A stretch of 63,536 nucleotides of DNA, counting the filler, from Olpidium bornovanus S191 (lineage: Eukaryota > Fungi > Olpidiomycota), in the NCBI GenBank assembly GCA_017911155.1. It is 26 parts of 26 records of this genome, joined end to end, with 100 filler letters (N's around TTAATTAATTAA, not from the genome) between each part and the next. Parts side by side here need not be neighbours in the genome. Positions count along the whole stretch, not along the records: positions 40,518 to 42,513 come from JAEFCI010002119.1; positions 42,614 to 46,278 come from JAEFCI010001450.1; 24 more parts are not named here. One strand, given 5' to 3'. Of this stretch, positions 40,518 through 42,622 are shown one piece after another (position 1 is the stretch's first letter; the number at the start of each line of letters is the position of its first letter). The notes under the pieces were generated by a model, which was given only the letters and a program-made list of their open reading frames with translations, had not been told where the DNA came from and made no database searches. The translations under genes and the position numbers were made by a program.

Positions 40518-41171
40518 ACACAGTGGAAGGATTGGGGCGGCGCAACGACGAAAGCGCTCGCTGAACTCGATCGGCAAGGCGGGTTCCGGCTCGTGCAGAA
40601 GCAAAAAACATTTATGTCGAAAATCAATAAAATTGTCAGGTCGCGTTCTACCGAAGGACTACAGAGGTTAGTTACAGAGGTGTGGAGATTATTTCGGGAA
40701 GCACTTGTCATGGATTTGCTAACGAACGCCATTTGGATCGAACTTTCAGATATGGTGAGGCGAGGGCTGAGGGTTTACGGAGACGTCGGGCAGCCCGCGT
40801 TGAGGTTCGCCTTGCGGAACCGGGGGGCCTCGGCGCTGGAAGACGATGAGGGCACGTTTGTGGTGCGCGTACGCGGCCTTTGCCGTAAGCTCCTCCTCGC
40901 CGTTGGCCTTCTGTGCACGACCGAGGCTCGTTACCACGAGATCGCCACTCGGTTGCGAGCCTTCCCCTGGCTCAGGCCGTTTGTTTGCAGCTGGGAGGAG
41001 ATACGGCGGCTGCGCGGTGGGCACACGACGATGTCTGAATTCCTGGACGCGGCGGGAGGTATTGTTGTCCCGCGTCGCGCCACACGCCAGGTTCGCTTAC
41101 AGCAACCAACCCCCGAGGCCATACTGGCTGCAGCGACCGAGGAAGAACTGGCCTGCGGGCCAGGGTTTTAG
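40518..41171 (+). CDS. Unknown protein A (5'-partial), paralogue of the convergent gene B
   Basis: Frame open from the contig start: TQWKDWGGATTKALAELDRQGGFRLVQKQKTFMSKINKIV... to TAG at 41169-41171. The 3' end may be spliced. Confidence 0.7.
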   Translation, partial: TQWKDWGGATTKALAELDRQGGFRLVQKQKTFMSKINKIVRSRSTEGLQRLVTEVWRLFREALVMDLLTNAIWIELSDMVRRGLRVYGDVGQPALRFALRNRGASALEDDEGTFVVRVRGLCRKLLLAVGLLCTTEARYHEIATRLRAFPWLRPFVCSWEEIRRLRGGHTTMSEFLDAAGGIVVPRRATRQVRLQQPTPEAILAAATEEELACGPGF

Positions 41172-41175
41172 AGCA

Positions 41176-41323
41176 AAAGCTACCTAAAGGTATGTAACTG
41201 CGGTGCGTATCTATCGTCGGTACGATCCGACGGTGTATTCGATGTGAGTTTGCAAAGACCAGCTAAACAGTGCCGTGCTTCCAGCAGGAAATAGCTAAAG
41301 CTACCTAAAGGTATGTAACTGCG
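41176..41323. repeat. Perfect 27-bp direct repeat pair (41176-41202, 41297-41323) between the convergent paralogues
   Basis: AAAGCTACCTAAAGGTATGTAACTGCG occurs twice, 121 bp apart. Confidence 0.95.
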
Positions 41324-41338
41324 TCTGTATGTACATAA

Positions 41339-42512
41339 CTACCCTCGTCGGCGAGATCTCGTAGCTCGCCCTTCGTTGTGCTCGATGGCCTGGATAACCG
41401 GTGGGACGTCCATTTCGACGCCCGTTGACGTCGTTGCCCAATCGGGGGGAGGGATCCCCTGCAATGCTTCCGCGGCTCCCGCCTGTGTCTGACCTCCCGC
41501 CTGTGTCTGACGCGTGGAGCGGACCTTCCGCCGCTTTCCGGCGCGGTCGGTGGCGCTGGACGTCGCCTGGGCGACACCGCTGCGGTGGTCAGCGCACCGG
41601 TCTGATCCCTTTTGCGTCCCGAAGTTGTTGCGCTATAACTTACCACCCCCGTACGTTCCGCCTGCGTTTCTTCTGAGGGTCCCGCAGTACCTTCGGGGAC
41701 CGGTATCTCGGTTATCTGCTAAGAGGAGCGTGGAGTTAGCTGCAGCCCGACAACGCACTGTCAGAAGTTGTTGCCCGACAACTACTCACGGGAGATGTTC
41801 CGGGTATCTCCGTTATTTGCTAAGAGTGGCGAAGAGTGCCGAGTGAGCTGTGGCACGATCAAACTCTCCGCCCGAAGTTGTAGCGCTACAACTCAACACT
41901 CACGGCACAGGTTACATCAGGCAACTCCGGCCAGTTTCGTTCCTGGCAGTCAATGTGCGTTTGTCAAACAGATAACCAACAGGTGGCGTGACCAAAAAGG
42001 GATTTGCTGCTACTCACTTTCATATCTTGGAGGTGCTGTTTGAGCGACCCCGCTTCGTCGCCGTGGATGCCTGCGTATATCTCGATCATACCGTCCACGA
42101 TTGCCGGCGCTCTGAGCGACGCGCGATACTGCCCGCAAATATCGTCGTGGGCGCGTAGATGCTCTATAAAATTCTTTCGCCTTTCGGCGGGGACGCAGCG
42201 CCACCAATCGTAGGTTCCGATTGTTGGGCTATCGTCTGATTCGAATACCAGCGCCAACGTCCCTACGCCACAGCGCGCCGCGAGCTCCGCAAGGAACTCA
42301 CCCACAGCTCTTTTGGCCGACAGCGCCGGCGCTCCTAGCTCCTCCCCCGTTGCTATACGATACACGGTGTTTACGATCTTGTTGACCTTGGCCATGAAGG
42401 TTTTCTGTTTCTGTATCAGGCGAAACCCCACCTTCGCATCCAGTTCCGCAAGCGTCGCGGCCGTCGCCCGACCCCATTGTTCCCAGTTGGTACTTTTTCC
42501 GCTGCGTAGATT
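41339..42512 (-). CDS. Unknown protein B (5'-partial); predicted exons >42512-42018, 41942-41904, 41819-41790, 41718-41644, 41566-41339
   Basis: NWEQWGRATAATLAELDAKVGFRLIQKQKTFMAKVNKIV... Four short GT(G/A)AGT...AG introns (75, 84, 71, 77 nt), all phase 0, give ...DMK|ERNWPELPDVTCA|QITEIPGTSP|QITEIPVPEG...|ATSSATDRAGKRRKVR...RRRG*. The last acceptor is ambiguous (41580 or 41567). Confidence 0.65.
41621..41893. repeat. Three copies of a 20-bp palindromic motif, one near the 5' end of each of three consecutive predicted introns
   Basis: GAAGTTGTTGCGCTATAACT (41621), GAAGTTGTTGCCCGACAACT (41764), GAAGTTGTAGCGCTACAACT (41874, containing a perfect 18-bp palindrome). Confidence 0.85.
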
Positions 42513-42622
42513 CNNNNNNNNNNNNNNNNNNNNNNNNNNNNNNNNNNNNNNNNNNNNTTAATTAATTAANNNNNNNNNNNNNNNNNNNNNNNNNNNNNNN
42601 NNNNNNNNNNNNNGAGAGAGCA

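Follow-up and report, generated by a model that had tools for sequence, protein, structure and literature searches.

Two convergent, partially paralogous genes in a contig of Olpidium bornovanus and the very rare protein family to which one of them belongs

A contig of 2 kb that begins and ends with the same short protein motif, on opposite strands and pointing inwards, raises the question of whether it carries a pair of related genes, a mobile element or an error of assembly. The window, meaning the whole stretch of DNA that was analysed, comprises 63 536 nt (filler included) of joined records from the fungus Olpidium bornovanus S191, and the contig in question (JAEFCI010002119.1, hereafter the piece) occupies positions 40518-42513. 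On the plus strand, the 3′ part of gene A (40518-41171) is an open frame of 217 codons that runs from the edge of the piece to a stop codon at 41169-41171; no other open frame in the piece is as long. Gene B converges with it from the minus strand, where the frame is open from 42512 to a stop codon at 41964-41966 (182 aa) and where the main visible exon (42018-42512, 165 codons) reaches from the edge of the piece to a GTGAGT donor at 42017. For both genes, the N-terminus lies outside the piece. Each gene contains a shared block of 42 codons, located at 40518-40643 in A (plus strand), where it is conserved up to the residues KIV at 40637, and at 42366-42491 in B (minus strand). The block is followed in A by a specific tail of 175 residues (40644-41168, plus strand), which is all-helical by prediction, and in B by a core (residues 50-165; 42018-42365, minus strand) that is conserved in relatives from the Logan assemblies and absent from A.

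The initial annotation of this DNA had quoted the motif correctly, with its position at both ends and its inward orientation. Residues 1-42 of A align without gaps to residues 8-49 of B, with 27/42 identical and 33/42 positive positions (BLASTP E = 1e-16), and the A-B block scores 71 bits in tblastx. It was also proposed that the two copies differ mainly at third codon positions as a result of protein-level selection, rather than being a recent inverted repeat, and the codon comparison bears this out. The block is 63 % identical at the DNA level, mismatches by codon position number 13/4/30 (chi-square p = 1.5e-5), the codon differences divide into 18 synonymous and 15 non-synonymous, and no inverted repeat between the two blocks was reported by blastn. 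This level of identity and this distribution of mismatches therefore point to an old duplication under protein-level selection and not to a recent inverted repeat or fold-back. A dN/dS-type check of the block by the Nei-Gojobori method gave a pN of 0.21, with synonymous sites saturated. Given this saturation, prolonged free drift of one copy should have pushed pN well beyond 0.2, so both copies of the block must have been under constraint during most of their history. At the level of substitution patterns, purifying selection on the block is demonstrated for both lineages, as is a real and ancient paralogy of A and B.

The same comparison bears on the quality of the assembly. Two unlinked loci could have been placed tail to tail by a chimeric contig or a fold-back artefact, and the short length of the contig (1996 nt), with homologous sequence at both ends, would be compatible with such an origin. 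However, fold-back or strand-switching gives near-identical arms, whereas the arms here are 63 % identical and diverge with a codon period. Furthermore, the approximately 800 nt between genes A and B are unique sequence, with internal repeats of their own and no abrupt break in composition. We regard an assembly artefact as very unlikely.

The motif had been given a length of about 40 aa. The conserved stretch is real, but the 42 residues found here (~40 aa for A) are a lower bound, because the edges of the piece cut both genes at the block, and the similarity of B to one of its relatives reaches at least 7 residues further upstream. Given that the N-terminal parts lie outside the piece, homology between A and B may also run further upstream, in which case the term ‘partial’ would apply to the 3′ side only. 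On that side the proteins had been described as diverging completely after KIV, and neither BLASTP nor profile comparison found A-B similarity beyond this point.

An exhaustive HMMER (phmmer) search with B against 1.84e9 representative proteins produced two matches, both of them unnamed: P0001, with 49 % identity over B residues 40-137 (E = 1.9e-23), and P0002, with 34 % identity over B residues 3-123 (E = 2.5e-13). Both originate from short contigs in the Logan assembly of run SRR10938843, and the P0002 locus also occurs in SRR10938823; the family clusters P0001 and P0002/P0003 correspond to loci L002, L001 and L003 of the Logan assemblies. A profile built from B and its relatives recovered only the same two clusters in the protein search, and two matches in a collection of this size accord with the earlier description of the genes as lineage-specific. 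The three-sequence family alignment contains 24 invariant columns, and the core of B carries the family signature ...VG(K/E)FL(T/A)(E/Q)LAA.CG.G...D(F/W)WR.... Across 104 ungapped codons, B and L002 show mismatches by codon position of 35/25/65, with a pN of 0.30 and a pS of 0.72. L002 itself has one frameshift inside the block and one in-frame stop, and is apparently a broken copy; the presence of such a copy in the family also fits a repeated element.

The relatives resemble B in possessing block and core together, with one intron donor position in common, and they have neither a name nor a Pfam domain. By contrast with the piece, the contigs of L001-L003 show no convergent A-like partner, and the tail of A is absent from all of them. 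In hhalign, A matched the B-family profile with 98 % probability over 41 columns, and no alignment was obtained for A residues 42-217. The relatives match B after the block, so it is B that carries the family core and A that is the odd copy. By these alignments, B is a regular member of a family that is very rare and taxonomically restricted. A, in turn, is a paralogue of partial or chimeric type, with the block joined to an unrelated helix-rich tail. The initial annotation had placed a selectively conserved motif within a two-gene module. This view stands for the block, which is under selection, but does not extend to the pair as a unit, since the relatives also conserve the part of B beyond the block (49 % and 34 % identity) and A is a copy of partial or chimeric type.

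The absence of a described family, as first reported, was upheld by every library consulted. Pfam, PHROGs, NCBIfam and PADLOC contained no match for A or B, with the best scores at chance level (LETM1_RBD, E = 0.053; DUF6196, E = 0.13) and nothing in PHROGs below E = 0.19, and the PDB gave no match to either protein by sequence or by profile. Word-indexed protein searches with either protein as query found no relatives, and scans for degenerate patterns of the block and the family profile found nothing in IMG/VR, JGI metagenomes or GTDB genomes. No exact 41-mer of the piece is present in GTDB, the exact products of A, B and a 113-aa ORF are not on record, blastn found no match among plasmid and phage records, and Rfam and tRNA scans of the piece were empty.

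The relatives were also informative about gene structure. Long ORFs in L003 and L001 are joined in phase by three GT-AG stretches (63, 55 and 67 nt) that all contain stops, and in two of these predicted introns a TACTAAT or TGCTAAT sequence lies about 20 nt upstream of the acceptor. A GT donor is found at one aligned position in B (42017, GTGAGT), in L002 (GTGAGT) and in L001 and L003 (GTATGG), at the point where the similarity along the uninterrupted frame breaks off, and the 67-nt stretch in L001 that begins at this common donor joins two ORFs in phase. In-phase GT-AG introns and a donor position in common with B therefore indicate eukaryotic multi-exon genes, and an intron-containing gene structure of eukaryotic type is established by these predicted introns.

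As B has its donor position in common with relatives that contain introns, the end of its apparent ORF is probably intron sequence. Candidate intron 1 of B (41943-42017, minus strand; 75 nt, GTGAGT...CAG) is in frame, has a donor at the position seen in the relatives and an acceptor picked by eye, and contains the stop at 41964-41966 that closes the apparent ORF. It is followed by candidate exon 2 (ERNWPELPDVTCA; 41904-41942, minus strand), which is short, has an uncertain 3′ end and bears a weak resemblance (WP.LP / ELP) to the post-intron sequence in L002 and L001. A 97-codon open frame (41339-41632, minus strand) may be the last exon of B. It holds the sequence GKRRKVR (about 41517-41537) and an 18-nt perfect, in-frame tandem duplication (41476-41511), and its GC content by codon position (0.67/0.63/0.71) is not informative. 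Among 93 enumerated GT-AG chains starting from B, 58 arrive at this frame, and for that reason its reachability does not discriminate. GKRRKVR had been cited as an NLS-like sequence of gene B; it does exist on the minus strand, but it lies outside the continuous ORF of B and would reach that gene only by way of several candidate introns.

The block had further been thought to recall Myb/SANT-like or trihelix DNA-binding domains, which would make the proteins nuclear transcription factors. It is similar to Myb/SANT and plant trihelix domains in being short and predicted helical, with two tryptophans and basic residues, and the L001 gene and possible downstream exons of B contain basic, KRRK-like runs. 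Myb repeats have three aromatic residues spaced about 18-19 apart and a three-helix fold. In the block, however, the tryptophans are in a W-x2-W arrangement (block positions 3 and 6 only), three residues apart and not ~19. Moreover, Pfam searches with A, B and their relatives produced no Myb, SANT or trihelix model even at E ≤ 1, there were no sequence matches in the PDB, and GKRRKVR is tied to B only through several candidate introns. The resemblance is thus without support, and we consider a DNA-binding role of this kind highly improbable. The structural comparison suggested in the initial annotation was carried out with AlphaFold and Foldseek, and no fold could be assigned: single-sequence models, in which the block is predicted as two helices around a GG/VG turn, reached a pLDDT of 48 for A and 41 for B, both low-confidence, and Foldseek returned only designed, generic helical repeats for A (E > 0.6), a result that carries no meaning because the single-sequence model is poor.

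The coding nature of the tail of gene A was judged only from ORF length and GC content by codon position. The latter (0.66/0.50/0.66) follows the same pattern as the validated coding part of B. The tail is rich in Leu, Arg, Glu and Ala, with 13.7 % Arg and a single Lys (0.6 %), and no relatives of it were found by word-indexed protein search, Pfam, the PDB or IMG/VR pattern scans. Gene A could, in principle, be a non-functional relic of the partial duplication, its frame open by chance in GC-rich DNA, with only B working. This would be in keeping with a tail that has no homologue and is Arg/Leu-rich and Lys-poor, with non-coding frames of the piece that run to 97-137 open codons, and with a GC dip just past the block that contains intron-like signals (GTTAGT ... 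TGCTAAC ... CAG). It is difficult to reconcile, however, with the 175 further open codons that make A the longest open frame of the piece, or with a GC3 > GC2 pattern that holds in frame; the low Pro and Ser and high Glu content of the tail is also unlike random GC-rich translation. In addition, the block of A kept 64 % identity while synonymous sites became saturated, which needs long-lasting constraint on the A lineage. We therefore rate the relic explanation as unlikely. The Arg/Lys composition of the tail is partly what GC-rich non-coding DNA translates to. An 83-nt intron in A immediately 3′ of the block, using the signals named above, was considered and rejected, being unsupported and out of phase with the long frame that follows, which has coding-like GC3.

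We consider it probable, although by no means certain, that the piece comprises the 3′ portions of two convergent, intron-containing eukaryotic genes derived from an old, partial, inverted duplication, with B as a family member and A as a partial or chimeric copy. The duplication would have left A and B convergent, with A keeping the first part of the conserved region, the block, and continuing into its unrelated helix-rich tail.

The non-coding DNA of the piece contains repeats that allow a different reading. A 20-nt palindrome, AAGTT...AACTT (family D1), is present at 41622-41641, 41765-41784 and 41875-41894, the second and third copies each with one mismatch to the pattern, and these three matches compare with none expected in the piece. 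The same arms occur three times in L001, even though protein identity is as low as 34 %, and in this feature of its non-coding DNA L001 resembles the piece; L001 and L003 differ from it in GC content (50 % versus 58 %). Hairpin stability is low (-4 to -6 kcal/mol), IMG/VR contained no copy of the palindrome, and literature searches for AAGTT...AACTT palindromes and for the run accession found nothing. A 31-nt direct repeat (D2, plus strand) has its first copy at 41172-41202, starting on the base right after the stop codon of gene A, and its second, 97 % identical, at 41293-41323, 16 nt past the stop that closes the 97-codon frame on the minus strand. Inverted pairs within the piece were weak (best 14-23 nt at 74-87 %), and the ends of the piece lie inside both genes, so that the termini of any element would fall beyond it. 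Giant viruses have palindromic 3′-end signals (the ‘hairpin rule’). Short palindromes that recur near gene ends at two related loci are reminiscent of these signals and of miniature inverted-repeat elements, but the arm sequence itself is conserved here, the hairpins are weak, and no viral gene or element boundaries were found.

Genes A and B might accordingly be cargo or core genes of a multi-copy mobile or virus-derived element, with the palindromes and repeats as its regulatory or end signals. Several diverged copies are known, one of them (L002) apparently broken, and all lie on short contigs of 1.7-2.7 kb; the piece stops at the homologous block at both ends, as happens when an assembler meets a repeat; and the palindrome is present three times both here, where none is expected, and in L001, alongside further local repeats. 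However, no transposase, integrase, recombinase, polymerase or capsid domain was detected in the ORFs of the piece or of L001-L003, all of which are short contigs, and the best candidates for terminal inverted repeats are unconvincing at 14-23 nt and 74-87 %. IMG/VR contained no protein relative and no palindrome copy, phage and plasmid records gave no match, the genes bear ordinary short predicted introns of spliceosomal type, and only three distinct loci are known. We find this reading improbable, and the transposon or virus origin first floated for the pair received no support from domains, from terminal inverted repeats within the piece, or from IMG/VR and PHROGs. A more specific version, in which the pair, its relatives and the palindromes form an undescribed repeated element of mobile or viral ancestry in a little-sampled microbial eukaryote, is in our view quite unlikely. 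In such an element the palindrome would serve as its own recognition or transcript-end signal, and the block would be the part of the family protein that must stay while C-terminal parts are swapped between copies. If a bounded repeated element using a conserved palindrome were true, the significance of this locus would rise.

A further suggestion had been that A and B are an antagonistic pair, which would here mean a poison-antidote system or a killer meiotic driver. The general picture of two adjacent, partly homologous, lineage-specific genes is consistent with this, but PADLOC and every other library were empty, there is no sequence sign of toxicity, and L001-L003 each show a single family gene with no convergent partner within the contig. 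For a toxin-antitoxin or defence pair in particular, NCBIfam and PADLOC were empty and the genes carry predicted introns of eukaryotic type. We see an antagonistic pair as extremely improbable.

Returning to the partial inverted duplication, the block may be a small helical module, with an interaction or structural role, at the beginning of the conserved domain of the family, making the same contact in A and B; we offer this tentatively, as a possibility that is on balance doubtful. Both proteins would then use the block to bind a common partner, or each other, with C-terminal parts that differ, and A would serve B-type proteins as an alternative or competing partner and would not be an independent enzyme. 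Microbial eukaryotes commonly have orphan families and partial duplicates, and the locus is comparable to such orphan families and chimeric genes in having no homologues outside a narrow source and in its part-length, adjacent, inverted paralogues. These are a category and not a family, and the comparison says nothing about function; the donor of the tail of A was not found. Nothing here points to an unusual mechanism.

In summary, our study describes a protein family that is new to Pfam, NCBIfam, PHROGs and the PDB and that is represented, among 1.84 billion representative proteins, only by two unnamed clusters from assemblies of raw reads. The result can be used to annotate the locus and to seed a family profile, and it provides a clean case of partial paralogy, in which a short N-terminal module is kept under selection on two different C-terminal bodies.

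The contig at positions 40518-42513 of the window (1996 nt, GC 57.6 %) carries two convergent open frames, gene A on the plus strand (217 codons, from its first base at 40518 to a stop at 41169-41171) and gene B on the minus strand (182 codons, from 42512 to a stop at 41964-41966), the 5′ side of each being truncated by the contig edge. The initial annotation had described a motif shared by the two on opposite strands, and BLASTP recovered it: residues 1-42 of A aligned without gaps to residues 8-49 of B, with 27/42 identical and 33/42 positive (E=1e-16). At the DNA level this block (40518-40643, plus strand; 42366-42491, minus strand) was only 63 % identical, and blastn within the contig returned no inverted repeat at this place. 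Its 47 mismatches were distributed 13/4/30 over codon positions 1/2/3 (chi-square p=1.5e-5), and 18 synonymous and 15 non-synonymous codon differences were counted. Nei-Gojobori estimates gave a pN of 0.21 with saturated synonymous sites, the pS >0.75 being an artefact known to arise when two-fold sites saturate. As synonymous sites are saturated while pN is still ~0.2, constraint must have acted on both lineages during most of their history after the duplication. This upholds the earlier proposal that selection on the protein, and not a recent inverted repeat, accounts for the pattern. The same figures exclude a fold-back assembly artefact, which would have given near-identical arms. Judged from these alignments, the paralogy of A and B is real and old. 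No A-B similarity was found 3′ of the KIV that ends the block by BLASTP, tblastx or profile comparison, in agreement with the divergence noted initially. The contig ends lie at, or ≤7 codons from, the block start (40518-40523; 42492-42512), and CAG acceptor-like sequences stand just 5′ of the block (ACACAG|TGG in A, CGCAG|CGG in B); this could reflect the edge of an exon, or a repeat at which the assembly broke.

Word-indexed protein searches with A and B returned no match, and an exhaustive phmmer search of 1.84 billion representative proteins with B returned exactly two. These were P0001 (101 aa, 49 % identity, E=1.9e-23, B residues 40-137; locus L002) and P0002 (191 aa, 34 % identity, E=2.5e-13, B residues 3-123; loci L001/L003, clusters P0002/P0003), both unnamed, without a Pfam domain and originating in Logan assemblies of SRR10938843; a second run, SRR10938823, also contained the P0002 locus, one substitution apart. 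Because both relatives match B 3′ of the block, the post-block region of B is conserved coding sequence. B and L002 differed by 35/25/65 mismatches by codon position over 104 ungapped codons (pN 0.30, pS 0.72), and in P0002 the block was conserved no better than the remainder of the family region. By these comparisons B belongs, as a regular member, to a small family; the conserved region of this family spans ~165 residues and begins ~7 residues before the block. A keeps only the first ~42-49 residues of this region, followed by 175 unrelated residues. The sharing behind the proposed two-gene module with a conserved motif stands, but the picture differs, as B is an ordinary family member and A only a partial paralogue. 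Upstream of the block, similarity between L002 and L003 could not be detected, so the conserved part of the family starts with the block; for the A-B pair, the upstream sequence lies outside the contig. An upstream exon of L003 (1-277) encodes an acidic, repetitive segment of EEHGAAEE-like units, so family proteins are much longer than the portion visible in the window. The GC content of L001 (50 %) and L002 (60 %), both from SRR10938843, differs by 10 points, which may indicate more than one organism in the run or a compositionally heterogeneous genome.

By their sequence organization, the relatives of B are eukaryotic multi-exon genes. Three GT-AG stretches (63, 55 and 67 nt), all with stop codons inside, interrupt the coding frame of L003/L001, and their removal links long open frames precisely in phase; TACTAAT or TGCTAAT precedes the acceptor by ~20 nt in two of the three. 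By protein alignment, the donor of the last such intron is matched in position by one in B (GTGAGT, 42017) and one in L002 (GTGAGT), so the final 17 codons and stop of B are probably intron. A candidate 75-nt intron (GT...CAG, in frame, 42017-41943, minus strand) would be followed by an exon beginning ERNWPELPD, with faint likeness to the next exon of L002 (WPGLP) and L001 (RELP). The NLS-like GKRRKVR assigned to B in the initial annotation is present, in a 97-codon minus-strand frame (41632-41339) that may be a further exon of B. Splicing from B can reach this frame, but as many as 58 of 93 enumerated splice chains do so, and its codon-position GC is uninformative. The frame also contains a perfect, in-frame 18-nt tandem duplication (two copies, 41476-41511).

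The tail of A had no relatives by word-indexed protein search or IMG/VR pattern scan, and no domain in Pfam, PHROGs, NCBIfam or PADLOC. A coding tail is favoured by its frame, the longest open frame of the contig, by GC1 > GC2 < GC3, as in the validated part of B, and by a helical composition rich in Leu/Glu/Ala and poor in Pro/Ser. Against this stand 13.7 % Arg with only 0.6 % Lys, and a GC dip with intron-like signals directly 3′ of the block.

Several repeats lie between the two genes. A 31-nt direct repeat (two copies, 97 % identical, 41172-41202 and 41293-41323) begins at the first base past the stop of A, its second copy lying 16 nt beyond the stop of the 97-codon frame. It contains the near-palindrome TACCTAAAGGTA and GTATGT, and a 6-7-bp stem (CGTCGG/CCGACG) lies in the 90 nt separating the copies. 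The contig also has three copies of a 20-nt palindrome whose arms are AAGTT/AACTT (41622-41641, 41765-41784, 41875-41894; 0 expected in the contig), within a ~100-110-nt unit repeated two to three times (41600-41910; repeat families D1, D3, D4 and D8). Each unit has one palindrome plus GTGAGT or GTAAGT on the minus strand, and the units may be either duplicated exon-intron units of B or a non-coding tandem repeat. The same arms recur three times in L001 (1871-1890, 2609-2628, 2643-2662), although B and the L001 protein share just 34 % identity. The palindrome forms weak hairpins (-4 to -6 kcal/mol) and was absent from IMG/VR and the searchable literature. Its conservation lies in the sequence, which would suit a binding site or a small dispersed repeat more than a generic terminator. 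In L002 (480-560, 890-950, 1370-1400, 1535-1555) a motif ATTTACGC(G/C)CG... occurs many times, some copies forming the palindrome TTTACGCGCGTAAA, which differs from that common to the contig and L001. Just 3′ of the gene's stop in L001 (1040-1265), three ~35-nt copies of GAATACC(C/T)TCACAATT... lie ~60-125 nt apart, paralleling the repeat-rich 3′ region of B.

The shared palindrome is the only feature hinting at anything held in common beyond the protein family, and is the basis for the less likely view of A, B and their relatives as parts of a mobile element. L002 looks like a damaged copy, with one frameshift within the block and one in-frame stop, although the GT-AG-bounded insert holding this stop may instead be an intron. 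Together with the short contigs and the palindrome, this broken copy keeps a mobile element in consideration as an improbable explanation. Against it, the contig and L001-L003 yielded no gene for a transposase, integrase or capsid, and the contig, which ends inside both genes, had no convincing terminal inverted repeats. No relatives were detected in IMG/VR, JGI metagenomes, GTDB genomes, phage records or plasmid records. The transposon, virus and antagonistic-pair interpretations suggested initially were without positive support, PADLOC giving chance-level values only. The initial failure to recognize a family was confirmed, as A, B and the relatives reached only chance level against Pfam, PHROGs, NCBIfam and PADLOC, and sequence and profile searches of the PDB returned nothing. 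The suggested Myb/SANT or trihelix likeness had no positive support: models of these domains gave no match up to E ≤1, and the two tryptophans (W-x2-W) are not spaced as in Myb repeats. Single-sequence AlphaFold models were of low confidence (pLDDT 48 and 41), so the Foldseek result carries no information.

Taken together, the most likely interpretation is a very restricted but ordinary eukaryotic gene family, of which B is a regular member and A a partial or chimeric paralogue, the two lying tail to tail. Within the conserved region of the family, the block forms the first part, predicted as two helices, and, more tentatively, might act as a common module, for interaction or structure, joined to a different C-terminal body in each protein.
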